DNA of 64,000 bases, taken from NCBI GenBank assembly GCA_964036045.1, contig OZ038378.1, positions 173,290,001 through 173,354,000 on the forward strand, in the 5' to 3' direction. Within the stretch, counting starts at the first letter, position 1. Every line of letters starts with the position of its first letter. Made by a program: the position numbers and the translations under genes. Source of the stretch: Eutreptiella sp. 'Long Island Sound 2002'. Taxonomy: Eukaryota; Protista; Euglenida. Positions 2,197-53,451 of the stretch are shown one piece after another. Below the pieces are notes generated by a model. The model saw nothing but the letters and a program-made list of their open reading frames with translations, was not told the DNA's origin and ran no database searches.

Positions 2197-2578
2197 CGTA
2201 TGTGGTGGACGGCCGGGACAACCGTGGAGGAGCAGGGCACCTTGGCTTCACGCACGCGGAAACGCAGAGAGGCAGGTTGTGGATGGCCTGTGTGGACAGC
2301 GAAAACAGTCAAACGACCCCCGCAACAACCAGCACAACCCCAATACGCCAACTACTGGGCGCTGCTAACGCGCACACGGCACATCCTGCCACATCCAGCA
2401 CAGCCCCAGCACACCAACCACTGGGCTCCGCGAATGCGGAAACGACACCAGCAGGAGCACCGGCCACAGTGGCCGACAGAAAGCAGCAACCCGACGCAAC
2501 ATGCGAAGGGAAGAACGGGGGGCTGTCCAGGGCCCTGTAAAGAAACAACAACCAGACGGAATGTCACACAGGGGGGGC
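2197..2578 (+). repeat. Dispersed repeat family A, partial copy ending in a G-run
   Basis: Clearly homologous to 36610-37028 (+) and 30490-30870 (-), e.g. the shared AAAACAGTCAAACGACCCCCGCAAC...CAGACGGAAT(G/A)TCACAC-Gn. Confidence 0.9.
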
Positions 2579-2731
2579 ACCCTGTGGTCGCCAACAGGCA
2601 CAGGGGGGTGGGCACTGTTGGAAGGGGGATGCAATTTGAAGTTTGTCGCCCTTTTTCGCGCAGTTTTTTTGCGAAAACAGCAGCAAAGTGGGTTCAGGGT
2701 GCCAAAGGCACTGGGAAATCGTTTCCGAGTA

Positions 2732-3930
2732 CCCTCCCCCCCCTTGTATAAGCTACGCCCGTGTCCAAGCTACAGTAGGCGTAGGGACTGTAATAATTGT
2801 GTACGTAATTTTAATTGCGTACGGTATGTAGTGCGGCCACAAAAGACATGGGTTTGGTGACTGATTTGCCAATTAGATGGAGCCATGGACACATTTGTTG
2901 TAAGCCTTCACCCACTTCAACCCACATGGCTCTGATTTTGGGAATATTTGTGCTTTATATTCCCCTTTCTTGCATCAGCTCACCATGCAATCTTCTCTTT
3001 TTGAACCTGGCCGTCCAGTTATTTTCACACGTTCCACCGGTGACCGTGTGGATGCTACAATGAAGGGACCATCAGAGAAGGGGGACCAATTTGCGGTATC
3101 TTTGGAGGAGAACTATGCCAAGTGGGTGGAAGACAAATTGATGGGGAAAAAAGGGAAACAAGGGCCCGTCCCCGTCCCTTCCCGTGAGGAAACCGCCACA
3201 TGGGTTTTGGAGGCATTCGATGCCATCACGGAGGATGATATTAGGGCCGCGTGCCGTGCGGCTTACTTCCCCAAGGGGATGAAGTTGTCGGAGCTTGAGG
3301 ATTTGAAGTATTTTGCCAATTCTGATTCTGATTCAAGTTCTGATTCTGATTCTGATTCCGGGACGGACACCGATGATGATGGTCCCATTTCTGAGTCTTC
3401 CTCAAGGGATGATTCTAGTGACTCCGATGATGAACCCACTGAAGTTGTTTGGGCTAAGGCTGCCCGAGGCGTGTGGGGAATGGCCCATGTCTTCGATGGT
3501 AAGTTGTATTTTACAAGGGACCACATGCAAGGCAATTTCATTCCCAAGAATTTGACGTTGCCCAAGCCCAAACCAGCCCCTAAGCCTCAGCCAAAGGCAT
3601 CTTCAAGTGGTGAGCATGTGCAATTGTTCCGCATGGTGTATGATCGCAAGAAGGGTTTCCGAGCCGAACATTTGTAGGCTTCGCATTCCTCATTGCTTGT
3701 GCCCACATTTGTGTAAACCTGAAATTTTCATGTTCCCAAGACCTTCTTGTGTTTGCATGCACTTGGTAATGTGGGCGGAGGTCAAGGGGCACTCATACCA
3801 TGCGCGCGCGCACGTGTGTGTCGGTAGTTGTATTTATTGCGCGTAAGCTACGCCCGTGTCCAAGCTACAGTAGGCGTAGGGACCGTAATAATTCCGTACA
3901 TTGGCGTAGCTTATACAAGGGGGGGGGGGG
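2732..3930 (+). mobile_element. Non-autonomous pogo-like (Tc1/mariner superfamily) DNA transposon
   Basis: TIRs CCCTCCCCCCCCTTGTATAAGCTACGCC / GGCGTAGCTTATACAAG-G12, flanked by TA at 2730-31 and 3931-32. A 40-bp subterminal direct repeat lies at about 2749 and 3844. The internal ORF carries a pogo-type C-terminal motif. Confidence 0.85.
2985..3677 (+). CDS. Intact 230-aa ORF in the pogo-like element: internally deleted transposase (no HTH or DDE core visible) with acidic linker and extra C-terminal domain
   Basis: Pyrimidine tract + AG at 2977-78, ATG at 2985. LEENYAKW...PSREETATWVLEAFDAITEDDIRAAC resembles the post-DDE helices of pogo/Tigger (DDE_1) transposases, followed by an S/D tract and EVVWAK...FIPKN. 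Confidence 0.6.
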   Translation: MQSSLFEPGRPVIFTRSTGDRVDATMKGPSEKGDQFAVSLEENYAKWVEDKLMGKKGKQGPVPVPSREETATWVLEAFDAITEDDIRAACRAAYFPKGMKLSELEDLKYFANSDSDSSSDSDSDSGTDTDDDGPISESSSRDDSSDSDDEPTEVVWAKAARGVWGMAHVFDGKLYFTRDHMQGNFIPKNLTLPKPKPAPKPQPKASSSGEHVQLFRMVYDRKKGFRAEHL

Positions 3931-4483
3931 TACAAAATCCCGATTCCAGCCTTCGGCCAAAATCTGGGGAAACGACGGCTCAACGGAGATCCCCTGTGCC
4001 ATACCTTTCTGTGACCCACAAGCCAGTGGCCCTTAGCGTGCTTGGGCTCATTACGGCAGGGGTTGCAGGCTACGCTTATTATCTGCGCACACGGAACCCC
4101 GCAGTGGCGTGCAGCAGGGCAGCCTGTGAGTTACACAGGCCACGGACAAGCAACCTCAGGGAACACATGAGCCAAGAGAGGACGAGCCTGCTATCCGAAA
4201 CCACCTGACATGCGGTTGGAGTGGCAAACTCGCACGCTTGCCTGCGGGCCCTCATTGAGAAACATGATCTGACCAAGGACAGCCACATCAGCATGTCAGC
4301 CCCCAAGGCCCTGTCAGCACCAGAGCCCCAGAAAAGAAACCAGCCCCGATGCACAGCGAGCAGCCGAAATGATGTGCTGCTAAACATCAGCCGTTCACCG
4401 GATGGAGGGTCTTCCGAACGAAATTAAAACACGGGCCTTACGCCGGAGGTGTCAAGCGGCCCGTTGCCTTTACCTCCACGACC

Positions 4484-4530
4484 CATCCCCCCTTCTTTCG
4501 CCTTTCCCAGGGTTTGTATTTGGGTTCCAG
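4484..4530 (+). promoter_or_regulatory. Putative spliced-leader trans-splice (or 5' UTR intron) acceptor(s) of the HRQ1-like gene
   Basis: Pyrimidine tract CCCCCTTCTTTCGCCTTTCCCAG (AG 4509-10) and TTCCAG (AG 4529-30) just upstream of the ATG at 4539. Confidence 0.45.
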
Positions 4531-4538
4531 TGGGTGAC

Positions 4539-4764
4539 ATGTCGTACCCACGGGGATCGCAATGGTTCAAGAAGGTCGCCAGCACCAGGAACAAGAGGAG
4601 CATTCAAGACGCCGAACAGCGGTCGGTGAAGGTGGAAGGTGCAGTCAAGATTGAAGCCTCGACTGGAGGTGACGATCGCAGTGAAGCAGCGAGTCCTCAG
4701 TCTGCTCCGTCCATTTCTCAGCCAAGGCCTCTGAAAAGACCGAAGGTGAGCCGGAAAACAGAAG
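4539..4764 (+). CDS. HRQ1: HRQ1-like helicase, exon 1 (basic, disordered N-terminus)
   Basis: ATG 4539 (MSYPRGSQWFKK...KRPKVSRKTE). Phase-1 donor GAAG|GTAATG at 4765 matches the phase-1 acceptor at 7655. Confidence 0.6.
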
Positions 4765-6017
4765 GTAATGCCCGACCCTCACAACCGAACCCATTGCTCA
4801 ATTAAGGAGAGTTGGGCTTGCAAGCGGCTCGAGTCTGTGCCGAACACAATGTTCCAGTGGTGTGGCAGGGGCGGCTGGAGCCAAGTGCATGGGTGCACAG
4901 TTGACCAAGTTGCGGCCTATTTTCCTTTGGTTGGATTCTACCTCCATCTACCTCCATACTCCCATTCTTTACCAAAATTTTGGATCCTGAAGTTGAATCA
5001 TGTAGGAATATTGGGGAAAAGTTGGCCATTGGGCAAACTAATTGCCCGTGGTACTTGGATGGATGATCGCTGCATTTTTGGCAAATTACAGCATTACATT
5101 TCTAGTATTTTGGCATCAACACCTCGATCGATCTCTCCATCATCAACCTAATCGTGCTTGTCCCTCGGTGAGTAAAATTGCAGCAATTGTGATCGGTGAT
5201 TCGGCCTGGGATAAAAGCAGGCACTAAGAAAGAATCCAGAAGGCTGTAACGCTGACAGGCTCTTGGGCGGACTGGCCCTAGGCGCATTTCACCACAGGTT
5301 TGGTGAAGAAGAGCAGTACGAAGACCAGTGCCTGAGAGAGGGAGACCAGCATCTGTGGGTCCATCAAGCTGCAGGGCACGAGGCTTGTGGAGCTCCTCGC
5401 CCCCCTCCCCCCCGAAGGGAAAATCAACGAACACATGGCACACAGAGTGCATAAAATGACTATGAAACCACTTTTTTCGCCTCCTCTTCCTTCTCCTCCA
5501 GATCAGCCCGTTTTCTCCCTGCACATTGCCTCGCCCCAACGCCACTATAGCCTGGATCCCCAACAGTCTCACAGGCGCTACCGGAAATGTAAATGGGCGA
5601 ATTCTGTCAGCACATGTAGCAGTCCCCATAGGAGCAACAACAATTGTTCCAGCTGGTGTCGATACTACATCCGGAGACGACAAGCTCATCTTCCAAAGGC
5701 CCGACCCAGGCAGCTGGGTGCCACAATGCACAAAAGCCCATCTTTCTCATTGCTGTGCCTGTGTGCTTACATCCACGCGTCACCACACGGGGGTTTGGGG
5801 GCGAGGGAACCTTCACTTTGGTTGCTCCCTCAAGGCCGCAGGGGACATGGACTGGGAGGCGGCGTGGTGGTTCCTTGTGATCACCTGTTTGACAACCGAG
5901 GTCATTTCAGGAAAGCCTGAAGCCTGTCCAAAGGCACCTGACATATGTTTGGGGTGGCAAGCTCGCATGTGGAGGTTGCAACCTGAAGCAGAATGCAGAC
6001 ACCTACAACCAGCTCAC

Positions 6018-6925
6018 CAAGATGCCATATCTCTCGGGGACGTTGGGGATAATGCCAGCTTTCTGGGTTTTCGGGGGTCGGTGCCATTGTTGCCTCATTT
6101 GTGCCCACTGAGTGTTCCAGAGGTAGGGGTATGTGGGGTATATTCGGAAAGCCCTTGAAAAGGGCTATTTGGAACACCCTGGGTCTGCATGCTGTACTGA
6201 CGACATGTTTGAGATTTTTGTCCGTTTCAGACGGTGCCTGTGTTGCTTGCTGCCTCTTTTTTTCAACGGGCAGCTGCCATGTCTTCATACAAATTCACGC
6301 CACGCGCTGTTGCTTCCCGGGATGCACCACAAAAGCCGCTGGATTTTGGCAGCACACCTGACCCAGTGCATCTGCAGCCCCATCCTGGTTATGTATGGCT
6401 GAAATCAGGATACAGTGAGGCCATTCCCTGGCGCAAGGTGGGGTTGATCAAACAACGAAACGTGGACCTCACAACCGATGGCCTGTGGGCCATGCTCCTT
6501 AAGGAAGGTTGGGTGCCAGTGAATGCACGGAGGTTGCAGGATTGGCAAAAATTGAAGAAATATGTCCCTGTCCACAAACAGGGGGATGTCTGCCCTAATG
6601 GGGTCCCAGCCCTGCCTGAAAAAGGGAATGCTGACGATGACAGTGATTCTGAATAAAAATGGATGAACGGTGCAGTGCCATGTTTGTGTGCACCGTCCAA
6701 CGTGTTGTGCTACGTTGAAAAATGTGACAACCCCCCCCCCCCAAACCCATACATTTCTGAAATGGCGTTTTCTTGCAGATTTCAAAAAGTATACACATAC
6801 CCCCCCCCCCTCCCAGGTGACGACATGTTTGCACATGGAAGCAAAAGTTGTAGAAAATGCCGAAAAGTGCCAAAACCCAGAAAGTTGGCATGTTCTGAAT
6901 GTCCCCGAGAGATATTGCATTCTTG
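6018..6925 (+). mobile_element. Non-autonomous TIR DNA transposon in HRQ1 intron 1, superfamily unassigned
   Basis: About 50-bp imperfect TIRs (CAAGATGCCATATCTCTCGGGGAC...TTTCTGGGTTTT at 6018-6068; reverse complement at about 6872-6925). Inner inverted GGGGTATGTG at 6126 and 6794; 14-bp direct repeat TGACGACATGTTTG at 6198 and 6818. Confidence 0.65.
6279..6656 (+). CDS. 125-aa ORF nested in the TIR element; possibly a transposase C-terminal remnant
   Basis: Poly-T tract + AG (6272-73), ATG 6279, protein-like composition (...WLKSGYSEAIPW...VPVNARRLQDWQKLKKYVP...DDDSDSE). AATAAA overlaps the stop. Family not recognised with certainty. Confidence 0.45.
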   Translation: MSSYKFTPRAVASRDAPQKPLDFGSTPDPVHLQPHPGYVWLKSGYSEAIPWRKVGLIKQRNVDLTTDGLWAMLLKEGWVPVNARRLQDWQKLKKYVPVHKQGDVCPNGVPALPEKGNADDDSDSE

Positions 6926-7655
6926 ACCTCAAAAACTGTAATCACAAAGACATCCGTCAGAGGGAGTCATCGTGCTTAGACAATGCCGTGTTGGCACAAG
7001 GAGGGGGGGGGGGGCTTCCAGACGCATGCACCTGTTCCATTCTCGTGGAACGAAACGCTTGGCGGTGGATGCTCAGCGGTGCAGCGTATGGGCTGCTCGC
7101 TGTGCATCGGTTGTGTTCGAATCTTGTTCTGACAGGGACTTGTGAGCAGGCATTCAGGTGCCACTGTTGCCACGTGTCAAATGGTTTGTGCGCAGTCGTC
7201 TGATGAGGGCCTGTGAGCAAAGCAATGTTACCATGTTGTCCAACTCAACGGGGGGCTTCCGTGAGGCACCAGAAGAACACGCGCATGTTGTTGTCTGGGG
7301 TGCGGGTTCACTTGTACTGATGTGGGTTGGTGCGCACGATAGGGAACCGCATCTGTGTATGCGTCACTTCTGAACAGCACGATTGCGAAGAAACTGAAGG
7401 ACACGCACGCTATCACACGCGCATATGCTGTTGGTGTAGGCCTTGCGTGTCACACTGCCAAGAGCATGCCCTTGTCCACAGCGCAGGATCCCGGAAAGAT
7501 TCCGGAGGGTGACGACCAGCGTTGATCTATGGCCAAAGCACAGGACCCCCGTCTGACCGTCGGTTTCCCTGACCCCAGCCATGGTTGTGCAAGGGGGAGG
7601 GGCTGGTGACCGGTCTCTTATTGGATTTTGCCTCCACCCCTCTTATCTTTTTCAG

Positions 7656-10316: not shown

Positions 10317-10495
10317 GTCCTCTGCCTGTGCCGTGCCCTCCCTTACCCCACCCCCCCCCATGTCAGACGAATGCCTTGTCCAACGAACACTCCTGTTCGG
10401 ACCGTATTTTTTGATGACTTTTATTGTTCGCTTGACACGAGGGGGGGGGGATGACGCTCCCTCCTCCCTCCCTCCCCCCGCCCCCCCTCCACCAC

Positions 10496-13400
10496 ACACG
10501 GTCACACACGTTCAAACCCACAGAAGACCCCGATGCGGACCACACCCCCAAGGGGTGGACCTGGGGATTCCACACGGAACACAGAGCGGATCCGGAGCCA
10601 GGCAGTGACGACGCTCCACTACCATTCGCCCCACATCGCAGACGCATCGATAGGATCCACTTTGCCTCACACATGCTGCACTCCCTGACACGCTGCTACA
10701 CACACAGGCTGGGCGGCTCCGACCATCGGGCAGTCATAGCAACACTCTCCCCCCCACACTCCACAGACACCCAGCAACGGTTACGAGTCCCAGTGTCCTT
10801 CCTGAAGGACCCGGAGACGGTAAAAGAAATGGAGGCTGAACTCAAAGCTGTCGGACACCAGGGAGATGGCTGGTGGGAGGAGGCCACACAGATAATCAAA
10901 AAAACGGCGTTCAGGTTTGAAAAATCCATCCACACACAGGGCACACAGGAGGCATTGGCCATGTTGATGAGCGCAACACTGCGCCATACGCCAGCCGAGG
11001 CACTGCGCTTCCTGCGTGAAAAAGGACTCCACCCCGAGGACACACAACGTGCATACGCGATGCTGCAAGCGTTTGCAGAGAAAGAAAAGGCAGACAGGAA
11101 TGGGACCACAGTCCTGAGAAAGCTGCAGCAGGTACTCCAAGAGGAGCCGGCGACGGTATACCAGAAGCAACAACGTAAAATGGAAGTGGCACGGCTCACC
11201 AGGGAACTGCAGCAGCGGCGGCGACTGGCGGTGCTCAGGGACAAGGGAGGGTAGCTCCTCACCGGACCCACGGCAATTGCCAAAGCACTGCAAGAACACT
11301 GGTCGGGTATAATGGCGGCAGGCACAAAGACAGTGCCGGAATGCATCGAATATCTGAATTCCCTTCCCCTGGCACAGAATATCAAAAACGTGGCGCCAAT
11401 CCTCCTCCGCCCCCTCACTCAGGAACTGGTTCTCACGGCGCTTGAGAACCTGAAACGGGGTTCGTCACCAGGGGTGGATGGAATCCCAGCGGAAATTTTT
11501 CAGGCGCTGCCGGATGTGTTTGTACCCAAGATGTTTCAGTCCATCTCTGATTTTCTACAAAGGGGGTCAATCCCGCATGACTGGTCCCTTGGCATCCTGT
11601 CCCCCATCCCCAAAGAACAAGGATCAGTGTCGATCAATTGTCTGCGACCCATATGCCTGCAATACGTCCTGCTGAAATGGCTATCGGCGTCACTGTACTT
11701 AATGCTAGAGGACGTAGTGGCATTTGTTACGCCATCAGAACAGAAAGCTTTTATTAAAGGCCGGTTCATCTTCGATCATATATGGAATGCACGGGGCGCC
11801 TGGCAAGCAATGCAAGAGGGCGTCATGATCCCTATAGACTTCTCCAAAGTGTATGACTCCATCCAACACAATTACATGGTTGCATTTTTCCTGCATATCG
11901 CCCTCCCCATCCCCCTCATTGCGCTCCTGATGGCACTGTTTAAGGCACCCTTCCTGTTTGGAGTAGCGCGAGGAGTCGTCAAGGACGTGCTTGTCCATCC
12001 GCAGTCAGGAGTCAAGCAGGGCGACCCACTGTCGCCGGCAATTTTTGTTATGGTCAGCTCAATCCTCGTCCGGAAACTACAGAGCCTGTCACCCTGCATT
12101 CATATACTCTTCTATGCGGATGATCTGTTGATCTACATACCGCTGCCACCCCCCACCGTCTGCAAATTACTGACACACATATTCGAAGCCATACGAGTGT
12201 ACGGACTGTTTGTGGGCCTGCGGATCAACCTAGGGAAATCAGCATTCTTACTCAAAGGGGAGTGGGGGGAGGACCACAAACGCATCCTAGCCTCCTTTGG
12301 GGTGCCTGTTAAAGCCAAAATCAGGTACCTGGGTATAGTCCTGGGACACATGTCCAGTGAGGAGGCATATGCGCCAACCATAGCCAGGGCCATGCAGAGA
12401 GCAGAATTCATGCGCACGCTTCCCCTCACACACCAAGAACGAGTAGCATTGTTCCAGGAGTGGGTCCTGCCACTACTCATTTTTCCAGCCAGGGCGTATT
12501 TCCCGACAGACGCGGTGATATCCCAGGTGTCAGCAGTGTACAAGACGGCCCTATGCCTCACCTCTTGGGGACTGACGCTCCCAATTTTGGAACTCCGACC
12601 GGGACTGGGGGGTGACACACTCCCCCGGCCATCCAAATTTTTACTATGGCAACACGCCACAGCCTTCATGCTTTCCAGGCAAGAATCAACAGTGGTGCCC
12701 CCCCTATCGAGGTCACACCTCCGGACGTGGGCCTCCACGTTTGGTGTCCCCCTGGAGGCCAGGTTTCTACCATGGCTCCAACTAGGACCAATCCCATGGA
12801 AAACGTACCCCTTCCTGGGAATGTCATGCAAGGCATTCTCACTGCTTCGCAAGCCAGCAAAGGTCCCGACCCCCCCACATACACAGATAGACGCCATGCC
12901 GCTGTGGCATTCAGTGTTGTTCAAGGACACGCGCATGAACACATACTACTGCCCGGCCCTCATTAGAAAAGGCATACACACAATAGCACAGCTCAGAGAC
13001 ATGGACATTGCGGCACACCTCCCCAGGACATGGATCCCAGTGTACCAAAGTAGCCTGGCCAGCCTGGCACAACCCAGCGCGCCTCTAGCCAAAGAGGACG
13101 AAGGGCAACCAGCATTCTGGCTACAATGGAACAAACGGATCATGCTTCGTTTCCTAATGCAACTGTCCCCAGAGACCCCGAGACAGACGCCGGACACATG
13201 GCGTGCGTGGGCCAGGCTCTCCCTACCCCCGAACGATCTGGTTTTCATTCAGACAGCACTCTGGAAAAAACTCACAGTAGGATGCCGGCTGGCCAACTGG
13301 CAACCGGCAGACACCGCGTGCCCCCTGGACAGAGCACAGGAAACAATGGATCACACACTCACGGAATGCAGATTCCTGCCCACGGCATTCCATCTGGCAG

Positions 13401-14917
13401 TGCAGTGCATCGGTCCTATCCCCCATGAAGAGGGGACGGTCGTGGATCCCGCGGAAGTGCTGATCAACGCCCCGGTGCTGTCTGTGACAACGCCACTGGG
13501 GCTGGTCTACTGGTCGGCAATCAGAGCATCTTGGGCAGTCCAGTGTAAGCATAAGTTCCTGCAGTTAGCCTCACCTCCCTCCTGGTCCCATTTCCTGCGT
13601 ACATGGATTAAGGTCCTGTCGGAATGGGAACAACACCCGTGCCCCTCCCTCCCTAAGAACGAGATCACCCTACTGCTTCATGCACTCCAAACCATGGACG
13701 CCACAACGGTGCTGGAACACCCCAGGGTACGAGTGGCGTCGGACAGACCGCTGCCCACACTCCACCAACCAGCCCGCAAAAAAAAGAAAAAGTTCGCACA
13801 GGCGGCAGAGTTGGCAGCACACCATGAGTCCGTTATCCGCAGTCACGTGGAGGATGGATGGTCCATTGTATACCCTGACGGGTCATCCGAGAAACATCCG
13901 GAAGTGGGGAGAGTGGGGGGTTACGGTGTGTACTTCGGAGACCACAGAGATGTGGCGGAATTTTTGCCCGTGAAGGAGCCTCAAACCAACATCCGAGGGG
14001 AACTCCGAGCAGCACTCAGTGCGTTGCAGGGGCACATCCCAGGAACCAAGTCCCTGATCTGCCCCGACTGTCAGCTTGTGGTAGATGGAGTGCTTGGCCT
14101 GGCGCAAAGGTGGCGGCGGCATAACTGGCGAAATACCTCAGGGGACGTGGCCCATGCGGACCTGTGGGCACAGATCCTGGAACTCACAGAGCGCCATGGC
14201 ACAGAAATCAAGTGGATGCACGTCCCATCACACATAGGAATCCGGGGTAATGAAAAAGCGGACCAACTGGCAGACCTGGGCAGGAGAAAATCACCATTGC
14301 TTTTTGGGAGAATATCAGTGACCCCCAGACAAGACGATGAGGAAGAGGAGCGGGAGCTGTTGGATGGGGAGATATCGGTATGGGGCGATGAGGAAGAACC
14401 CCCCCCCCCCCCCGGAGGAGGAGAACCCCCCCACCCCCTGCCGGATGCCACGAACACCGCAGGCCACACCACAGCGGCCGGTTGGAGTTCTTAGTCCGGA
14501 AGTCATTGCCTCGCCACTATGGGATGTGGAAGTGTGCACACCAGCCATGATACGCAAGTGCCGCAGATTTGACACGCCACAACCACACAGCCAAATCAAG
14601 TACACGCCACAGCAGGTACAACTACCGCGGCAGTCACAGCCGACGCCCATGTCAGGGGTGCATCACACACCCCGGGTAATTGGACCCAACAGGTGCACGT
14701 TCCAGACGCCAGAACCGCCGTCGCCGCTCACCCCCAGTGCCAGGACCAACCTGCTGAGGTCACTGAACCTGGTGGAGATGGAGGGGGGGGGGGGACACCC
14801 CCCGAAAGGGCACTGTCGGACAGTTGGATGACGGACAACTCTGATACAGAATCGGTGGCAGACACCGACTCCACAATGTCCTGTAGCACAGCGTGCTCCA
14901 TGTGTTTCACTCCTTAA
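10496..14917 (+). pseudogene. LINE ORF2 (APE endonuclease C-term - RT - zf-RVT-like - RNase H - S/T/P-rich tail), disrupted
   Basis: EN: WTW...RRIDRI...SDHRAV. In-frame TAG at 11252-54. RT: SPGVDG, LRPICL, IDFSKVYDS, GVKQGDPLSP, YADD, YLGI. ALWKKL...CPLD...DHTLTEC. RNase H at about 13859-14285: YPDGS, TNIRGEL, DCQLV, HVPSHIG..GNEKADQLA. Apparent frameshifts at C15 (14399-14413) and G12 (14783-14794) would extend the ORF to TAA at 14917. Confidence 0.9.
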
Positions 14918-14985
14918 TGCAAAACGCCACCGCCTCGGTGATGCGTGAGCATGCCCTGTAATTTGAGTGGCTGGCATCAGGTATC

Positions 14986-15414
14986 TTCGGTATAGTACAA
15001 CGGTATCATCAGTGGCCCTGACGCCGGATGGCGGGGGTTCGATGCCCGGAGCGTGGCTTGTGGCGGCTCGCAATGGGTAGTTCTAGTGTTGTGGTAATAA
15101 ATACTTGGGTTCCATCTAGGAGGATTATTTGCTGTAGGGAGGAGCATACCTGAAAGTGCACGGGGGCCCAGCCCCGCAGTGCGCTGCGTCAATGCGGCTC
15201 GTGGAGGCGACGGCGCAGGCCGCCCGATGAGCGTGTTGATGTTGGTGTAGCGTGCCTCTGGGGCGGGGGGGGAGAACCGAGTGCCCCCCCAGAGATAGCC
15301 AGGTACCGACAGCTGGTGGTATGGGTGGGGATTCCCACCACATCGGAAGCATAGCATACTGGAAGTGCACGGGGGTCTCGTCACGCGGGTGTAGGTTCGA
15401 TGCCCACCGTGGAG
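14986..15414 (+). repeat. Three degenerate tRNA-like (tRNA-Asp-like) units in the LINE 3' UTR
   Basis: Units at about 14986-15052, 15141-15215 and 15345-15414. Two carry the B-box GGTTCGATGCCC; the third unit reads TAGCATACTGG...GTCACGCGGG...GGTTCGATGCCC...GGAG, like eukaryotic tRNA-Asp(GTC). Acceptor stems do not pair, so these are not functional tRNAs. Confidence 0.4.
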
Positions 15415-16060
15415 GCGACGGAGGAGGCGGCCCGGTCATCGTTGGGCTGGCCATTTTTCCGCCAGGCCACAAATGACGTATACACCAGCACACACACAGA
15501 CAGCACATGCAAGCGCCCAGGCGCTGCCCGCATCCCCCTTCCCTGTATGGCTGTATGTTGACCTCTGCAAAAGCCAGTACCCACTGGGGTTTTTAAATCC
15601 TAAGGACCTAAATATCCCAGGGCCGGTGGCAGTGGCCCACACGGGTGACCTCTGACCGCCCCAGCCCCCATGACCTGGCACACCCGAACTGCGGGTATGT
15701 GGCCGAGAGGGGCCAGCTCACGCAAGCATACCAGTGACAACAGGGCGCCAAAGTGGGACACAATGAACGCTACGCCCTGAACTCAGTCCGACGGCGACAA
15801 TGCCCTGAACCCAGTAGATGCAGCCCGACTCTTGCCCCATTCAGGGAGGAGGGAAAGGAAAGAACTGCAAGACACTGTCCGCGTGACACGAACAATCTTG
15901 GAACTGAGTTGGCAATGAAGGCCATGAGGCAGGCGCGGCTGGAGCTGAGTGGCGGGTCCACACCTGACCAATTGAAGCCCCCCTCCACCACGCGCGACGC
16001 CCTCCCTCCTGCCGGGTCCCCCCATGTGCGGCCCCCTCACCCTCCCTGTGCCCTGCGCAG

Positions 16061-17406
16061 GTCCCGATCCTGCAGTCCATCGCCGTGGCAGAGCGCGCGC
16101 TCACCTCCCCGTCAGCGACGCTGGACGGCGCCGGCACCACCCCGCACTTCATGTACGTGTCCCCGACGAAGGCCCTGGCCCAGGACCAGCTGCGCGCCTT
16201 CCGGGACTTCGTGCCGCAGAAGTGGCAGCACCTTTTCCAGACCTACGACGGGGACGTGCCGCATAGCGAGCGGTCGCACGTGCGCGACGCCGCGGCCGTC
16301 ATGCTGACGAACCCGGACATGCTGCACTGCAACATGCTGCCGCAACACCGGCAGTGGGCTGCGTGGTTCGCCTCCCTGCGGTACGTCGTGCTGGACGAGG
16401 CGCACATGTACAAGGGGGTCTTCGGGGCCCACGTCGCGATGGTGCTGCGGCGGCTGCAGCGGGTGTGCGCGTTCCACAAGGGGCTGGCGAAGGGGGCGTG
16501 CCCGGTCCAGTTCGTGATGTGCACCGCCACGCTGGGGGACCCCCTGCGGCACTTCCACAGCCTGACGTCCCTGACCGCCTCCCTCATCGACAAGGACGCC
16601 AGCCCCTCGGGGACTAAGTACGTGGTGCTGTGGAACCCGCCGCCGGAGTCCCAGTACCAGCCCGTCCCCAAGAAGGCGGGTGCAGAGCACTGCAAGACGG
16701 AGGGCGTGGCGGCGGTGGCGCGGGAGGGAGCGGACGGGCACGCCCGTGAGCCCGGCGACCCCGTCGCTGGTGCAGCTGCGGGTTTGGGTGGGGTAAGTGG
16801 GGGCGTCAGTGGGAGCGGGGGCGGTGCGGGTGTCGAGGCAGGGCCGGGGAGTGTGGGAGGGGCCCCTGTCAAGACCGAGGCCGGGGGCAGCAAGAGCGCG
16901 CTGGTGCCCGCGGCGTACCGGAGGGCGGACGGGCAGCTGGCGTACGACATCCAGCGGACCAGTCCGTACCGGGAGGCCGCGCGGCTCACGGCCAACCTCA
17001 TGGTCAGCGGCCTCCGGACCATCGTGTTCGTGAAGGTCCGGCAGGTCGCGGAGCTGGTGCTGGGGTACCTCCACCGCCTGCTCAGAGAGAGCGGCAACCC
17101 CGACCTCATCCCCCTCGCGAAGGTCTACCGGGGGGGCTACCAGGCCGCGGAGCGCCGCAGTGTGGAGCGGGAGCTGTTCTCGGGGCAGCTCCTGGCCGCC
17201 GTGGCCACCAACGCCCTGGAACTGGGGGTGGACGTCGGGACCCTGGACGCCGTGGTGATGGTGGGGTATCCGGGCACGAAGGCCAGCCTCTGGCAGCAGA
17301 TGGGGCGTGCCGGGCGCGGCACGAGGCCCGGACTGGCGGTGCTGGTCGCGCTTCAGCAGCCGTTGGACCAGTACCTGCTGCGCAATCCGGAGATGCTGTT
17401 CGACAG
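16061..17406 (+). CDS. HRQ1: HRQ1-like helicase, exon 4 (motifs Ia-VI)
   Basis: CAG|GTC acceptor; YVSPTKALAQDQ, LTNPDMLH, VVLDEAHMYKGVFG, CTAT, ATNALELGVDVG, QQMGRAGR; phase-2 donor ACAG|GTTC at 17407. Confidence 0.95.
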
Positions 17407-17412
17407 GTTCTT

Positions 17413-17500
17413 CCCCTGCCCCTGCCCCTGCCCCTGCCCCTGCCCCTGCCTCTGCCCCTGTTATCTGCCCCTCCCCTTGCCCCTGCACCTGCACTGCCCC
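17413..17500 (+). repeat. (CCCCTG)n hexamer microsatellite at the start of HRQ1 intron 4
   Basis: Tandem CCCCTG directly after the donor; it explains the spurious PCPCPC tail of the ORF track. Confidence 0.85.
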
Positions 17501-17937
17501 GTCCGTCACCAGCGGCCGTCGGTGGGGCGTCAACCGCTGTCGGCCCAACATCGACGGTGGGGCTCACAAGTGTTTTTCATGTGAAAGGAAAAAAAACAAC
17601 CGATCAGGACCGCCGCTGACGCAGAGGCGTGAATGGGCACTGGGGGCTGGTGGTGGGCCGACGTTGGGTGCTGGTGAAATGATGGGCGGAGCCGGTTCGC
17701 AAATGGTCGGTCAATGGTCAACCGATGGCAGTTGGCGGTTCTACGACAGCCGTTGGGTCACTGGGGGCTGGCAGTGTTGTCGGGGGCTGGAAGCAGCCAG
17801 AGTTCTGCCGTCGTCTTGATCGGCATCGGTGTCATTGAGGGTCGCCCAGACATGCCCGCCCCTCCCCTCACCCGTACCCCCGGTGATTACCTCCGCATCT
17901 GCCTCGCCCCTCCCCCGCGCATCTGCGCCTGGAACAG

Positions 17938-22249: not shown

Positions 22250-23930
22250 CTCAGCGGCTCCGCTGCTTCAGGTATGCAAAACGCGACTGGAAACGATAAA
22301 CAACGGGTATAATATTTGGGCAATATTTCGATTCGCTAAGCATCTGCAATACAGATCGTACGTTTTTCATTGAACTGTTGACTGCAGCCAAGAGGCTTTT
22401 TTTCTGTTTGCTGCGTCGGACTGCATGCGCCCAGCCATCCATCTTTCTGCTGGAAGCCCCATCCCAATTTCAACTCTCCCACCACAAATTGGGCTGCTTT
22501 GCTGGATCCCAGAGATCCCAGAGATGCCAGACAGGACACATTCTTGAGGACACCAAGTGGGCCTTAAGCACTTCTCCGTTGTGGCTAGATATCGGTCCGG
22601 GGTTCAATGGTCTCGTCCGAATGTTGTACCCATAGTGACTTACCTGGCAAGGTCTTGAATTAATGAATCATTTTGCCATCTTTAAACTTTGAACTTCATT
22701 TGACGGATCCGCTTCAAATATTTAGGAAATTCGTGTGCACCAGTGGGCACAAACACTAGAGTGCGGTGTCGAGACGAAACAGGATGTGTTTTGACCTAAT
22801 ATCGCAGTGGCTTTACAATGCAGCCCAGTCCAACAACCACACAAGCACCTAATATCGCAGTGGCTTTACAATGCAGCCCAGTCCAACAACCACACAAGCA
22901 ACAAAGTGCACATCAACGTGATTCTTCAGTGAATGAGACCAAAATGTGCGCGACAACGGTCAAGATGTGGTCATCGAGTGTTCAGTTAGTGTGCAGATGA
23001 TGCGATCTCAACACTTCACAAGCAATTTCAGTCTCAATCAAGGGTAAGCAGTGCTCAGTGGTGTTTGATTCATAGTCATGGGACTTTTTTTTTGGCAAGT
23101 TCTCCATGGTCTCACAAGCAAATGATTTCTTTGCAAGTTTAGTGTTCGTTGTTTGTGTCACGGCTAAGACGCCGTTAGCTTTGCAATAGGCTTCGAAGAT
23201 GTCGTCCACGAGTCCATCTCTTAGGAAGAAATAACTCAGCATTTGCACTTATTTCTCAAGGTTGATACATGCACGATAATGCCGAAGTGGAGATGGGAAG
23301 ATTATAAGAAAGATTTGCCATAGTTAATGAACCTTCAAGTGAAGGAGTACAGAATCATCGAAGGGGAATTCTTCCACAAGGCAGCAGCGGATTTATTGAA
23401 ATCTGAGCGACATATTTGTGTGCTCAGTAATACATCCATTCTTTGGAAAGCACTTTTGGTAGCTTCTTCCACATTGAACGGCTTCATCAAACTTGTTCCG
23501 TGATGAGGAGTCAAATAATCTGCTCTGGGCGCCTGAACAATGATAAACAGCAATAGGCATCTGTGAGAGGAATGCAAACCATCTCTGGGTTTTGGATTCT
23601 CCGGTGGTTCTTTGTCCAGAAATGTCTAGGATTCCTAGGCATCACAAGTCCGGATAATTTTATGCTTGCTCAACAGACATCACCAGACACCCAGCAAGCA
23701 ATTCCTGCTGGAATGTGCTGCAATTCATCTTTGCACCATTGTATTTCTGATTGAAATGGCCAACTGGCACCAAGAAATGGTCACCTGTATAAATTGTTCG
23801 GCAAAATGCCAAAACCCCAGCTTTCAACTTTGCAGCATTTTCAAGAAGTTGGACAAGGTGGAAAATAAGAAAATTGCCGTTGCAGCTTGCAATATTGTCT
23901 ACACATCAAGAAGCGCAAATATCATATGTT
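22250..23930 (-). pseudogene. Decayed coding remnant of unknown origin in the convergent spacer
   Basis: A chain of protein-like minus-strand reading frames broken by stops and frameshifts; no family recognised. Confidence 0.25.
22794..22900. repeat. Perfect 53-bp tandem duplication
   Basis: ACCTAATATCGCAGTGGCTTTACAATGCAGCCCAGTCCAACAACCACACAAGC starts at 22794 and again at 22847. Confidence 0.95.
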
Positions 23931-26900
23931 GTTAACATGTGGTAAAACAAATGGTAGGTGGTGGTTGTTTTAGTTTTGAAGCCAGTGACTACCCGTGGAC
24001 CAATAGAAACACCCACCGGTTGCTTCCCTACCCTCGAAAAAGCTTCTAGGCACCTACCAATCATGATGTGTTAAACCTCACACATACACACACATTACTA
24101 TGTAGCCACTTCTCTGCAAAAAATGCTCAAGAAAATGGTGGCTACGAATTTCATTATGTTCCACCTGGGGTGCTTGTCATGCTCACCCAGATCCATACCA
24201 CTAGACTATTTGCTCCCGCCCTGCGCCACCACATGAGTCATCCATCATTCTAGGGGCCAACTACGAGATGCGGCAGATTTTCATCCCATTACCTAGTTCC
24301 TTTTGGACTCTTGTGGACCCTCATTCATGTGCTATATGCTGCCACCGCCTGCCATGCTCTCTCCAAAGATCCATCCAATATTCGCTTTCCCCCCCATCCA
24401 TTTGCAACCACCCTAACAATATAATCTCATGAAGACATCACCGCCACCACCACCATGGTGCAAGCACCCATGCACCTTCAAAACACACACCTCCCCCCTG
24501 CAAGTCAACAGAATCATTCCTCTAAACTAAAGGAATCCCCGTAGGAAATCCTATATGGGCTGAAATGACCATTGCTTCAAATAGCCATTCTGTTTTCCTA
24601 AGCTTGAAGTAAATGCATGCAAACTTGTTCACTTTGGCATGATGAATTTCCTCATTGCGGGAGCCGAGCTGGGAGGAGTGTGTGTGCCACACACACCTAT
24701 TACTTTTTGGGGTAGTTATCTCAAGAATAGCCAAATTTTCACATGATTTTCCACCGGGTTTACACTGTTTCGGCTCCTGGTGGGTTGCCCCATGACTGAA
24801 TACTGTGGTTCAGTAGACCCTGTGGTCTCTAGAGACCTCTTCTTGTCGCTGATAGCGATTGGACTCCCCTAAGTGCAGTCGACAGCAGATGTGCACACAA
24901 AAAGGTCACACAAAACAAACAGCAACAAACTGTAGACAGTGTCATGCAAAGATAGACGCCAAAGCAATCCACCTCATTTTCACTACATCGATTCGAAATG
25001 ACATGGACCATTCTCCAGAGATGCCTCACAATTCACCCGCGCTCTTTGTTCATGTGGGCCACATACATGTGCCCAAATTGACAACACAATTACAAATGCA
25101 AAGGCAGTCCCATGTTGGTTCCGTGTTTCATCCTCTAGCCCAATAATGTCATATGTTATTGACAAGATGATCTGGCTTTGCACGAATAGAACCGACAAAT
25201 TGTGATTTGTGACTATCATAGATTATTTGGGAAACATGAAATGGGCAAAAAAGCTAATGCTTTTGCAATCATTTTTGCACCTTTGGGCCAACCTGCACTC
25301 CGAGTTGTGCAGCAAAACTCTGTCTGCGTGCTTGTGAATGCTATATATCTCCCCCGAAGATCAAAGAGATGGTGGAGGCAATTGAGTCATCAAAAATGTG
25401 ACAAATGTAGGATGGACATGATCATCATCATGGTCATCATCATGCACCATTATCATGATCGACACAATGCAATTGCAAAAATTTTTAGAAAAATTCTCAC
25501 AGTCCAATTTCAACCCAATGATGTCATGTACAAATTAAAACCATATTGTGCATATTTTTTGACCGTAAGATAGCTCCAGATTTTACACCGATTTGTCGCG
25601 ATTTGACTGGACTTGGCTGATTTCAGTCGGATCTGAGTGCTTTTCATATCGTTACAGTGTTTTTGTTATTTGTATGCGAGAGATACAATGCCTGCGACCT
25701 AGCATCTCTATCTATCTAATGCGCAATCGATTGATGGTGAATTCATTGCAATTGTTACCATTTCTTACGAATTTGGCAATGAATCTGTATTTTTATGAAC
25801 GCATTGCATTGGCCTATATTTTTGGTCTTCATCATGAATATGGAGGGACCAAGAAACACAGCTAATGTCGTGCAACTTCATTGGGTGTTGTGCTACTTAG
25901 TAGAATATTGGGCAACATCAGCTAGGCTAGGATTTATTGGTGTTCTAAACTGCTACATGGAATATTCCTAGGCTACGTCTCAGAAATGTGTATTTTTAAC
26001 AGTGCGACAGGACTATAGTGCTCACAACGTGTCTTGTTGATCCTCTTTGTAGTCAAAATCAGCTGCTACATGCACATATGTGTTGTCATTCCAGATTCAT
26101 ACTCACACTTTGCAAAGATGTCGTATAGCACAAGACTGCACAACATATGGTCAACCAACCCGTAAAAAGGGTATAAATTGAGCCACTACGGGGTTGCACT
26201 TGCTCACCATGGCCCTTCGTAGAAACCAGAAGGTTCCTATAAAATAGTGAAAAAAAACTCTCCCTCTACCCCCCCCTCTCTCTGCTCTTTGTAAACAAAG
26301 TTTTTGCAACTTCTGCCAAAAAAAGTGCACCCAAATCATGCCAATTTTTTTTTTGTCATTTGTTTCTATACCCCAGCTATACCAACCAACAAAGTGCATT
26401 CGTCTTGCACAAAAATAGAGTACACAACATACATTTCTTTTCATAGGCAACCTACACTTTCTTCCGCTGGTGTGGGAGGCATGGCAAGGGGTGGAAGAAG
26501 CATCATTTTTGAATGATGTCAAAATCAAAACCGCAACATTCCATGCACCGGGACTATCCATGGAGTAGCCCGTACCCCACCCAGTGCACAATAATGACAT
26601 AGTCTTGGTAGGTCCACTACATGCGATCTGCCACGAGCAATAGGGGCCGGACGACCGAGTGAAATGCCCTTCAAGCCTCAGACCAAAGCAAACCGGAGTT
26701 TTGGAGCAGCCTTTTGGCTGCTTATCCTAAGCTCAAAAAGTTCTTGGTGCATGGGTGTAAGCTACTTGTCTACATACACGTAGCTGCTTGCTACTAGTTG
26801 GCCAAAAGTCAATAGGGGCATTTCTCTGGAGCATATCGTCGTGAGCACCCAACGGCTATTGCGAGCCCATCCAACACGTGACAAAACGGCTTCTAATTGA

Positions 26901-33634: not shown

Positions 33635-36222
33635 CTGCAGTGCGGAGCACACGAGGCGGCTTCCCCTGTCCCCAATCCCCCCGTGCTCATGCAAAGTGAG
33701 CATGTGCAACAGTTCAAAGTGTGTTATTCTCGTACCCAGAAGTTCTTCACCGTTCCTTTGGATCCTCAATGGCATTAGTGTTGAATGAAACACATTGGCA
33801 CCGCATCAATGCGAAAGTCGCTTCACACGTGTTCTCTTTGCTTGCATCGGTGGAGAGTACCACAGTTTGCCTTGAAATACCCTTGCAATCCCCCCCCCCA
33901 CTGTGCCCCCGCCCCCGCCCCTGTCCCTAATCCCCACTGTGCCCCCGCCCCAGGGCTGTGAAGTGGCTGGGCAGCGGCATTGGGGCAAACGGCTCCTGCT
34001 GAGCACCATAGCAGCAGCACACCATTTTGGCGAGTACAAATGCAGTTGGCAGGGGTTGGGGGCGCGGACAACTGCCATTTTGGGTGTGGAGGGCGGTTGT
34101 GCCGGGAGGCCCCCCCCTCCCCGCCTTCAAGCGATTCCCTCCCTTTTTCCCATTTTTTTGTCCGGTCCGAAGCCCGGCGTGCGCGCACACACGCCCGGTT
34201 ACTCCGGGTGGCCTCTCCTGATTTGGTTTGTTTGTATTTGTATTCACTGCGACCACCGCGCCAAGGGCAAGCCCAAGCCCCAAAGATGTGGTGATTGCCT
34301 CCACAAACAATGAAGATGATTCGGTGTCCATCATCATCGCCGCGCAGGATGCGCTTGTCCCATGGATTGACAACGTTGTGTGGCGGTGTAGAAACGGAGG
34401 GCGTCTGGTAAGTGCGGGGGGCAAACGGTGCGGATAGAACCTCCTGAAAACTGACCTTGATTGGCAAAACCGTCGATCAAGAGCTTCAGAACTGGTGCCC
34501 TACGAGGAAACCCCCCGTGGCACATTGTTTTGTGCATCTGGCATCCTCCTGGGTGCCGTCACGGAGGAGACCCCAGCCCCGCACACCCAGAACACAATAT
34601 GGCTGCTCCAAGAGGGAGACGTACCCCTGGGGGCCTCCTCGCCAGCGGTGCCCCAAACACGCCGCTTAGCATGGCCCACGCCTGCCCATCCTCTATGCGG
34701 GCAGTGCTAAGCGGTGCGCCCTGGGCAAGGATCTGCCTGCCGCGGGGTCACTGATGGGCATGCGTCGGAGTGTGGGCATGACCTCTGGACTCCGTCGCGC
34801 CATTTTTTTTTTCAGCGACTTGCAAATGGCCCTGTTGAGCCCCTTTTCCGGACCGCGGCCTCCAGGATGCGCTTGAGGGCGAGGGAGGCTAAAAGGGGTT
34901 TTCAAAAGCCATTGCAGAAGCGGTTACTAGCGTTTGGAAAAGCGGTTGGGGGATGAAGTCTGGGGGCTACAATGGTCGGTACGCCGTTGGTGGTGGACAG
35001 AAGCAGTTGGACCGGAGCGATCTGTCACTTCAAAGGGGGTTTGTAAGGCTACGTGTACGCACCGTTCTGAGTTTTCAGTGGTAAATTCGGTATGTTGCGT
35101 GCCCCAAACCGCCGGGGAAACGTATTTGTAGTGGGGGAGAGTGGGGCAGTTGTCCCTCTGCTCACAAGTGCTGCTACGGCCCCTTGGCATCGCTCCCACG
35201 CCGGCGCCGGCGATGCTTCACATTCGGTCATTCCCTTGACTGTGAACTTCGGAGGGTGCTCTCCACCGCCGATGTTGGAAATGTAGCACAGGGCCAGGGG
35301 GTCCCGGGGTCATTCATCAGCGGTGCACTGCATTTCCGGGCATTTTGCCCCTTTGTTGGAGCATGCACCCACACCCAGGGCATCGCCTCTGCCCTACGGC
35401 GGGCTGATACCTGCGTGTGGGTACGCGGCGGGGGGGTGGTCACTTCAAGGGGGTGGGTAACCCCCCCCCCCCCCCGTCAAGCGCACGCCTGTCCAGCCCC
35501 CCCGACGGTGCTGCGTCACCTTCAGGACACCAACTCCACTGGGGCACGACAGGGATGGGGTCCGCCTCTTCGTCGCTGGTCCACAACCTCCATTTGGGCG
35601 GTTTGGAAATATGAACACCCACTGACTACTCCAGGGCAAGAGGCGAAACACGTGCAGTGCGCAGGGGTGGAGGGAGCCCACAGGTTCTGTTCCAGACACC
35701 CGCCCTCCCACGCAGCACCACGGCGCTGGTTGGCTCAGTAGCACAGCAGGCGGCACGACGTGCGAGTGAGAGAGGGAGCGGTGCTCGCAACACCGCCCGC
35801 CTGCGAAGCGGGATATGCATCGTATGCCGCACCCCCCGCATCGGCGGTGGTGGGGGGCAGGGGATGATTGCATGTGAGGCCTGTCAGGTCTGCGATGGTG
35901 CGGATGCCGCAAGCCGGGAGTTTTCCAATCCATCCCCCCGCTCCACTTACCCCAACCCTCCCAACCCCAACTCGACCCGCCACACAACAGAGACGGCACT
36001 GGACACGGTCGTACCCGACACGGCACCCGACCAGCCCTTGTGCCACAGCCCCTGACGACAAATGTACCCGGTGCACGGCTCCCCTCGCCCTCAGTGTCGG
36101 GGCCAAGCCTTTTCTTAGCCACCGGGGGGGGGGGGGCGTGAAATGAAGCTGGCAGGCACCCACTCCGAGTGAGGCAGGCGTCATTGGGCCGGCCCTCACA
36201 GAAGAGGCGGGGGGGTCAGCCA

Positions 36223-52038: not shown

Positions 52039-52963
52039 CTGCAGGAGAACATGCATGGCTAGAAGCACCCCGACGGTGGTTTGGAACAGCCATGCCTGCA
52101 CCGATGGGGGTTTTGCACGCACCTTTCGCGCACCATGAATGTCTTGGGGTTTGTGGTAGGGCCCTTGGGCCAGCGTTGCGGGAATGCGACAAGGTGGGTG
52201 GCAGGTTGAGTGGCATGTGGGGTGGTATGTTGGGTGGCATGTGAGGTAGTTGATGTTGGGGATACCTTCATACCTCTTGCATGTACATTACAATGCACAA
52301 AAAGGAAATGCCTGTCCCGAGGAGTGATGCTTGGTCTTATTGACGAATGGATTCGCTGTTCAATATTGCTGTTCACTCCATCGATCCGTTTCCTGGGCCA
52401 AAACAGGACTTTCAGTGCAAAAATGGAAATTTTGTTAGAAAAAGGCCATTTGTGAGAGCGGCGCAAATGTGCAAATGTGTTGGGGGCACAAAGCAGTGCG
52501 CAAGGAGGGCTTGGACACCAATCCCCATCGGTGCTGTGTGCAAGTGGTGCAAAAATAGCACAGTCTTATAGCACAGTCTGACAGCACCCCTGCACCCCCA
52601 CATCTGTCAGGGGTGGGGGCAAATATTCTGTTGGGGTTGACAATTTGCACATGGCTGATTAACAATGCTGTCAGACAGTCCTTCCCCCCCCCAATTCCCC
52701 CCTTCTTGTCAAGTAACAGAGGTAATGACGCATTGGGAAACCTCGTTTTTGGGCGGGGGCTGCACAGTTTTTGTGGGGGATTTGCAAATGTCAGCGGCCA
52801 TTGTGTCCATCACCTTTGACCTTGTGTCCCAACCCCCAACCGCCATCAACCGCCTCCTGCCCCCGTCAAGCGCATGCCTGGCGTAGGGACCGTATTACTT
52901 TGGTGCTTTGCCGTACCCGCGACGAGGCGTGGGTGCCAGGCCACGGCTTACTGTTACCGAGGG

Positions 52964-53078
52964 CCTCAATAGGTCAGGTGTGGACCCGCCACTTAGCTCC
53001 AGCCGCGCCTGCCTCACGACCTTCATTGCCAACTCAGTTCCATGATTGTGCGTGTCACTCGGACAGTGCAATGCAGTT
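52964..53078 (-). mobile_element. 115-bp extreme 5'-truncated copy of the intron-3 LINE family
   Basis: Ungapped alignment to 15863-15977 (11 mismatches in 115), same 3' end, perfect 13-bp TSD CTGTTACCGAGGG at 52951-63 and 53079-91. Confidence 0.9.
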
Positions 53079-53451
53079 CTGTTACCGAGGGGGGGTGGGT
53101 GGCAGCCTGGGCTCCTCCACCTGACCCACCTACCTACTCCCCACCCACATCAGAAAAATTTTCCTCAGGAACAAAATGCAATTTATCAAAGGGGCCCAAA
53201 ATTGGAGGTCAATTGTAGGTGCACAAACTTTTTTTTTCCGCCTGTGAACCCCCCCCACCCCCACCCCCCGGCCTTGGTCACGGTCACCACTAAGCCGTGG
53301 CCCGGTGGGTGCGTCGGTCTCATTCCCGGCCAAAAAAAATCAACCGGGTTCACAAAAAGGGGCCGCAACACAACGCATGACGACACGGGGCAGGGCCAAG
53401 GGCATCGCAGGGAATCGATCGGACGTCGCAGGGGCAATGGCACTAGGGCAC

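Follow-up and report, generated by a model that had tools for sequence, protein, structure and literature searches.

How does a long interspersed nuclear element (LINE) choose its landing site when its copies carry no A-tail and stop at one and the same base? The question is raised by two copies of a LINE family in a 64,000-nt stretch of the genome of the euglenid Eutreptiella sp. 'Long Island Sound 2002' (GenBank assembly GCA_964036045.1, contig OZ038378.1, positions 173,290,001 to 173,354,000; C1:173,290,001-173,354,000 in the coordinates used here, and hereafter the window). An earlier note on this DNA had claimed that both copies end at the same base without an A-tail, that they are flanked by target-site duplications (TSDs) of 14 and 13 bp, and that both targets contain a C7 run. 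Direct reading confirmed these points: the TSDs are CCCCCCTCCACCAC for copy 1 and CCCTCGGTAACAG for copy 2, each in a C7 run, and over their last ~120 nt the two copies show 91% identity. We searched the whole 2.28-Gb genome for further members of the family and found that it inserts almost only into long C/G runs, a landing site that we have not found reported for any LINE. We put the probability at roughly 85% that the family is an L1-like LINE with an apurinic/apyrimidinic (AP)-type endonuclease (an APE-type LINE), 8.4 kb in length and tailless, that integrates into long C/G tracts by target-primed reverse transcription.

When the last 117 bp were used as a genome query, 1,708 candidate places were obtained, of which 40 were scored, with 97-100% identity to the query. 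The 40 further copies that were fetched all had the same terminal base, followed by C2-C10. Across the genome, the exact end CACACCTGACCAATTGAAG occurs 144 times; it is followed by CC in 142 cases, by one C and then a non-C base in 2, and directly by a non-C base in none. For the sister subfamily to which copy 2 belongs, 3' ends were assessed by genome pattern counts, and CC follows 163 of the 168 exact ends, the other 5 being followed by a non-C base (A in only 2 of the 5). CC thus follows 305 of the 312 exact ends of the two subfamilies. This near-invariance indicates that the elements have no poly(A) or microsatellite tail, and neither was found at any of the 312 exact ends in the genome-wide pattern counts. 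The poly(A) or A-rich 3' tail that characterizes the L1 clade is absent, and what had been claimed of two copies in this respect therefore holds for the family.

Both junctions could be analyzed in 30 independent copies, after L001-L005 had been merged as one event and L020 and L021 as another. A readable TSD that starts in the C-run is present in 23 of them, and two more (L023 and L036) are ambiguous, fitting with a C-only TSD or with a 1-nt discrepancy. Among the 23 clear cases, the upstream C-run has a median length of 12 (range 3-17), with C5 or more in 22, C7 or more in 19, and C12 or more in 13. The C-run target proposed in the earlier note thus stands, but C7 is not its typical length, as the preferred runs are longer (up to C17). 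In the same 23 cases, the number of C residues at the 3' junction averages 3.9 (range 2-8) and never exceeds the length of the upstream run, the unique part of the TSD averages 7.3 bp (range 3-11), and the whole TSD measures 11.2 ± 2.2 bp. The upstream flank retains the entire run, the 3' junction lies inside the run, with 2-8 C (10 in rare cases) between it and the downstream edge, and the second break occurs ~11 bp further on, in unique DNA. The placing of the 3' junction within the C-run, first noted in the window, is therefore repeated in the other copies, and neither random targets nor tails were seen among the further copies: there are C-run targets throughout the 3' ends read. The orientation of the run is also constant. 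The C residues are on the sense strand of the element in every copy read, and the G-run is therefore on the primed (bottom) strand, which supports the earlier suggestion that the G-run strand may be the one that is nicked and used for priming.

Uninterrupted paralogues of three target sites demonstrate that the C-run was there before the element. The insertion in L012 (C14 upstream, C5 downstream) corresponds to an uninterrupted paralogue at L036:~40-110 that contains C14 and is 87-89% identical on both sides. The insertion in L008 is at a C7 run, and a paralogue of its 5' flank in L030 also has C7, after which L030 diverges. The full-length element in L055 is inserted at C17 in a repeated module, CCTTGCAAT-C(n)-GGGAGACCGTCAC, an uninterrupted copy of which, ~480 bp away in L055, has C14. 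No uninterrupted empty site for copy 2 was found by an exact pattern search of the genome. These sites bear on the notion that the C-run is made during integration, by the reverse transcriptase or in repair synthesis, through slippage or the addition of untemplated nucleotides. Reverse transcriptases are able to add untemplated nucleotides, and the 5' runs (C12-C17) match the second mode of the run-length distribution of the genome. However, the long run lies upstream of the TSD's unique part and not within the staggered cut, in DNA that is not synthesized during integration; had the cDNA received untemplated C, the sense strand would show G, not C, at the 5' junction; and the run lengths of the empty and filled sites are C14 and C14, C7 and C7, and C14 and C17. 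The empty sites, together with the position of the run outside the staggered cut, lead us to reject an origin of the run in the integration reaction, to which we assign only a very small probability.

Because a preference for C-runs could be an illusion in a genome that is full of them, the background has to be considered. Runs of C/G are hugely over-represented: in the window, 96 runs reach 7 or more and 40 reach 10 or more, where composition predicts 13 and 0.3, respectively, and the run lengths in the window show two modes, the second at 12-15. Genome-wide, 113,482 runs are exactly 13 long, compared with ~150 expected from composition (~700-fold). If homopolymers were so common that insertions would adjoin them without any preference, as the earlier note had allowed for two C7 hits, the observed junctions should match this background. 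Runs of at least 7 nevertheless hold only 1.4% of the bases of the window, and a random oriented junction in the window has a probability of 0.0064 of lying in a C-run of at least 7 and being followed by CC, whereas 19 of 23 junctions are at C7 or longer (binomial P ~1e-38). Long runs are over-used even among runs: when only positions already in runs of 3 or more are considered, runs of 12 or longer make up 3.9% by bases but were used in 13 of 23 cases (P = 4e-13). These P values are conservative, because the genome-wide density of C13 is about half of that in the window. Chance also does not explain the constant strand. The window background and the binomial tests (P about 1e-13 to 1e-38) thus refute a chance association, and we attach practically no weight to it. 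Nothing that explains the origin of the bimodal homopolymer lengths was seen in the window or in the genome count data.

The C residues at the 3' junction could derive from the target or from the RNA of the element. The more C residues a junction has, the shorter the unique part of its TSD tends to be (r = -0.47; P = 0.012 by permutation), and the sum of the two is less variable than it would be under independence; both properties favor target-derived C residues, and hence a nick inside the run. For runs of at least 12, the mean number of C residues at the 3' junction is 4.4, compared with ~7-8 for a uniform choice of position. The nick is therefore biased toward the edge of the run, which suggests that the junction between run and flank, or the need for a second nick outside the run, also matters.

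An element with an oligo(C) tail would be read differently: the RNA would end ...GAAGCC(C)n, the nick would fall where the G-run meets unique DNA, the C residues at the 3' junction would be copied from the RNA, and the true TSD would be only the unique part of 3-11 bp. Such a tail would account for the CC found after 142 of 144 exact ends in the one subfamily and after at least 163 of 168 in the other, and it would fit with the observation that 3 C is the commonest count whatever the length of the run (r = 0.22 between the 5' run and the 3' C count) and with the CCC of L036, which is detached from its target run. The anticorrelation described above, and the steadier sum (11.2 ± 2.2), are instead what would be expected for C residues within a fixed stagger, and a 3' C count of 2-10 is wide for an encoded tail; moreover, no C-adding activity is known for mRNA. 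We consider the oligo(C) tail possible but not probable. If it existed, the register of the reaction would change and the finding would not, as the target would remain a C/G run. The near-invariant CC and the L036 CCC do favor some role for C residues in the RNA.

The reaction that we envisage for a tailless element with a nick inside the run is as follows. The endonuclease of the element would cut the G-run strand a few bases inside the edge of the run, and the exposed 3' end, consisting of at least two G residues, would prime cDNA synthesis exactly at ...GAAG. For priming, this end would probably pair with C residues located just past the element in RNA that has read through from the source copy. 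Such pairing would set the start point of synthesis, account for the minimum of two C residues, and account for the absence of a tail even if the mRNA is polyadenylated. The scheme would be the C/G counterpart of the pairing of the T-rich L1 nick with poly(A).

The regular TSDs of 11 ± 2 bp, present in 23 of 30 copies, imply two staggered enzymatic nicks. A quite different account would dispense with the endonuclease and have the element use free 3' ends at G-runs that are fragile by virtue of G-quadruplexes, R-loops or replication stalling. Endonuclease-independent L1 insertion is known, and runs of 12-17 G could adopt unusual structures, but endonuclease-independent insertions typically lack TSDs. 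In addition, the copy in L056 (in which an internal run is G15) has its second open reading frame (ORF2) in frame and encodes a complete endonuclease domain: PF03372 (Exo_endo_phos) matches over profile positions 1-225 at L056:3328-4290 (E = 4.8e-10, 40 bits versus a cut-off of 24.5), and the catalytic motifs LNCNGL, IQEPH and GGSDHRAV are conserved. We think it very improbable that the family inserts independently of its endonuclease.

Several observations and properties of the data weigh against insertion by a nick inside a pre-existing run, or limit the precision with which it can be described. A TSD is absent from 5 of the 30 copies. In L036, whose target is C10-T-AGACCC, other bases separate the 3'-junction CCC from the target run, so that either RNA-derived C residues are favored or a 1-nt deletion is needed. 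An element-encoded or RNA-borne short C tail would yield the near-invariant CC equally well, and the sequences on their own fit alike with a specificity set by the endonuclease and with one set by annealing of the primer to the RNA. The TSD lengths were partly called by hand and carry an ambiguity of 1-3 nt from microhomology, the homopolymer lengths come from a long-read assembly and may be in error by a base or two, and the ~35 independent copies read at the sequence level represent the youngest layer of the family (93-100% identical). For the copies without a TSD, 3' transduction was considered and rejected, as there were no shared 10-mers that would indicate a TSD further downstream.

The earlier identification of the element as a LINE is upheld by the AP-type endonuclease (PF03372 in L056), the RVT_1 and RNase_H domains, the TSDs, and massive 5' truncation. 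Only ~19 copies extend into the 5' part of the window copy (the endonuclease region), compared with ~1,700 candidate 3' ends; truncation is heavy, as is typical for LINEs, and copy 1 itself starts at ~2941 of the 8.4-kb full-length element, within the endonuclease coding region, as judged by its alignment to L056. The family has the features of an APE-type retrotransposon without long terminal repeats (a non-LTR retrotransposon): a reverse transcriptase, an AP-type endonuclease, a fixed 3' end, variable 5' truncation, TSDs, and no terminal repeats. Sequence comparisons identify the reverse transcriptase as L1-like. Its closest solved structure is human L1 ORF2p (E = 2e-20), with R2 at 5e-8, and the nearest proteins outside Euglena-like assemblies are plant L1-type proteins with reverse transcriptase and zf-RVT domains (22-29% identity). 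The closest solved structure to the RNase H domain is cellular RNase H1 (human, E = 1.8e-16). As to the ingi clade of euglenozoan LINEs, which possess an RNase H, there were no trypanosomatid proteins among 79 protein matches, and a poly(A) tail of the ingi type was likewise not seen. Four related families (P0001, P0002, P0004 and P0005) are 51-63% identical to this one.

The features of the two window copies are listed in Table 1.

Table 1. Positions in the window of the two LINE copies, their target-site duplications, and the coding and noncoding parts of copy 1
Feature	Position	Strand	Evidence
Copy 1, C7 run of the target (10481-10487) with the 5' TSD, 14 bp, CCCCCCTCCACCAC (10482-10495)	10481..10495	+	Direct reading; same 14-mer at 15978-15991
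Copy 1, LINE body, 5'-truncated, ending ...CCAATTGAAG	10496..15977	+	Colinear alignment to full-length L056; 3' end common to 144 exact genomic ends
Copy 1, ORF2 part: C-terminal part of AP-type endonuclease and linker, ended by in-frame TAG 11252-11254	10496..11254	+	Frame shared with the 11312-14494 ORF; homologous L053 stretch has GGSDHRAV
Copy 1, ORF2 reverse transcriptase domain	11606..12340	+	Pfam RVT_1 E = 2.4e-18, residues 99-343 of window:11312-14491
Copy 1, ORF2 RNase H domain; ORF2 stop 14492-14494	13865..14278	+	Pfam RNase_H E = 2.7e-23, residues 852-989
Copy 1, 3' untranslated region (UTR), 1.48 kb, without tail	14495..15977	+	Direct reading
Copy 1, 3' TSD copy, C6 at start	15978..15991	+	Direct reading
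Copy 2, C7 run of the target (53095-53089) with the 5' TSD, 13 bp, CCCTCGGTAACAG (53091-53079)	53079..53095	-	Direct reading
Copy 2, 115-bp 3' fragment of the sister subfamily, ending ...CCTATTGAGG	52964..53078 (53078 -> 52964)	-	Direct reading; last ~120 nt compared with copy 1
Copy 2, 3' TSD copy, C3 at start	52951..52963	-	Direct reading

In copy 1, the reading frame 10451-14494 is open except for one in-frame stop, and ORF2 has a weak match to zf-RVT in addition to RVT_1 and RNase_H. RVT_1 matches in the family have E = 2.4e-18 and 2.8e-20. Four copies (L053, L055, L056 and L057) are full length, at 8.41-8.43 kb each, and contain an ORF1 of ~650 codons, for which there was no Pfam match, an ORF2 of ~1,575 codons that spans element positions ~2256-6982, and then a 3' UTR of 1.4 kb. 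The full-length copies open with the 26-nt spliced leader ACTTTCTGAGTGTCTATTTTTTTTCG, which is the Euglena gracilis spliced leader as printed in PMC6242988, and continue with the region of the first ATG of the element (e.g., L056:1073-1100). Since the full-length 5' end is a spliced leader, the template must be a trans-spliced mRNA. L057 carries a complete leader and, in tandem, a second partial leader of 17 nt, a relic. Another start resembling a spliced leader (CTTTCTGAGTGTCTA) is found at L010:1617-1680, ~31 bp downstream of the 3' end of the LINE copy there, an arrangement that suggests neighboring retrocopies in head-to-tail order.

The coding region of the element itself contains homopolymers. 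There is a run of G10-G15 in the endonuclease region (element position ~2585; L053, L055, L056 and L057), at which ORF2 is frameshifted in most copies, and C15 and G12 runs are present near the end of ORF2 (window 14399-14413 and 14783-14794). The lengths of these internal G/C runs vary between copies and shift the frame in most of them; this variation could be true polymorphism or homopolymer error in the assembly. The internal runs are also potential self-targets. The 3' UTR has a diverged internal repeat that contains two GGTTCGATGCCC motifs resembling the T-arm of tRNA (window 15037-15050 and 15393-15406). A tRNA-like 3' UTR was rejected, because ARAGORN found no tRNA and Rfam gave no match at E <= 1, and so was a conserved 3' stem-loop that might act as a recognition signal, because shuffled sequence folds better than the terminal 144 nt do (z = +2.3).

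Some copies share more than the element. L001-L004 were considered as independent insertions at the same site, and this was rejected, because they are 99.5-99.9% identical mosaics of window segments; they share the 3' junction of copy 1 as near-identical mosaics of its locus, and were counted once. In these loci (C16, C9, C7 and C2), three window segments of ~1 kb (4626-5609, 15614-16388 and 23178-24177) are joined directly, skipping 10.0 kb and 6.8 kb of the window. One of the joints lies within the LINE 3' UTR, and the joints are not GT-AG. Capture of fragments in a mobile element, template switching, and unconventional splicing are candidates for their origin. Fragments of the 3' end of the family are also found in short tandem arrays: five copies at ~940 bp (C9:44266349-44270133), six copies at a spacing of ~2,960 bp (C10:46972967-46987785), and the pair L020/L021, 1,077 bp apart (C21:12937627-12938820). 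These arrays are the product of duplication of the element together with its flank after insertion.

Long C-runs in this genome are often part of other repeats or adjoin them. The module into which the L055 element is inserted recurs in a longer form, CCTTGCAAT-C(n)-GGGAGACCGTCAC-TTGG-GTGAC...-C(n), in L055 (minus strand, reverse complement 578-640 and 1057-1090), at L058:1369-1420, at window 33881-33900, and in the flanks of L023 and L033. Other repeat families stop at a C10-C17 run, for example ...CTTGTGCCAA-C11 at window 29936 and 33024 on the minus strand. Beyond copy 1, the window contains an exon of a DEAD/DEAH-box helicase (16061-17581, plus strand; Pfam DEAD E = 8e-17, Helicase_C E = 4e-12), which starts ~70 bp past the LINE copy, after an apparent polypyrimidine-CAG acceptor. 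Copy 1, which is in the orientation of the gene, seems to lie within the C-rich end (the polypyrimidine tract) of an intron of the helicase gene. Because C-rich tracts occur in introns, intronic insertions of this kind are likely to be common.

A wider reading, which we offer tentatively, is that the family mirrors L1 with C/G as its bases, that endonuclease and reverse transcriptase have been retuned to let a primer made of the G-run pair with C residues at the RNA end, and that the excess of G/C tracts and the retroelements feed each other. If so, the relationship would be like that between A-tails and L1/Alu in mammals; each insertion cuts a single run in two, and C-runs also adjoin other repeat families here. 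How AP-type endonucleases and L1-like reverse transcriptases choose their sites is still poorly understood, and target-specific LINEs are natural models for programmable RNA-templated DNA insertion. A young and abundant L1-like family that follows a G/C-tract logic without a tail would provide a natural contrast to the logic of T/A tracts and poly(A), in which the endonuclease loops and the RNA end could be compared with those of L1. It would also explain part of the landscape of a 2.3-Gb genome rich in G/C homopolymers, and it would supply a rule for annotation, whereby the boundaries of the family are given by a C-run and an 11-bp TSD.

Among known elements, the microsatellite-specific LINEs provide one comparison. 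A 2013 review (PMC3812793) lists the APE-type families Waldo (ACAY), Mino (AC), Kibi (TC), Koshi (TTC) and Dong (TAA), states that their targeting mechanism is not understood, and includes no mononucleotide C/G target among the LINEs listed. Full-text literature searches identified no non-LTR element tied to a poly-C target and no non-LTR element tied to Euglena, and the published E. gracilis assembly paper gives repeats as bulk percentages only. The present family resembles the microsatellite-specific LINEs in being of the APE type, in placing nearly all of its insertions in one simple repeat and in one orientation, in having a junction inside the repeat, and in not requiring an ordinary poly(A) tail. 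It differs in that its target is a mononucleotide C/G tract rather than a repeat with units of 2-4 nt, in that only the 3' junction lies in the repeat and the second break is in unique DNA, in that its TSDs are half C-run and half unique, and in its euglenid host.

Mammalian L1 nicks T-rich sites (5'-TTTT/AA) and uses poly(A)-primed reverse transcription. The family described here resembles L1 in its reverse transcriptase, its AP-type endonuclease, heavy 5' truncation, the approximate size of the TSD, and a homopolymer-like target in which the nicked strand is able to base-pair with the template's 3' end. In contrast to L1, it uses G/C in place of T/A, has a precisely fixed 3' end and no poly(A) tail, and possesses an additional RNase H domain, an ORF1 without a Pfam match, and a spliced-leader 5' end.

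In R1Bm and in telomere-specific LINEs of the TRAS/SART type, target sequence that the RNA has acquired by read-through base-pairs with the nicked DNA. The role proposed here for target-like downstream bases (the C residues) in setting the start of reverse transcription would be similar, although those elements use a unique site in ribosomal DNA or telomeric repeats, and pairing in the present family is suggested by the invariant CC. The family thus behaves both as a microsatellite-specific LINE and as a base-swapped L1, and what is new is its homopolymer C/G target.

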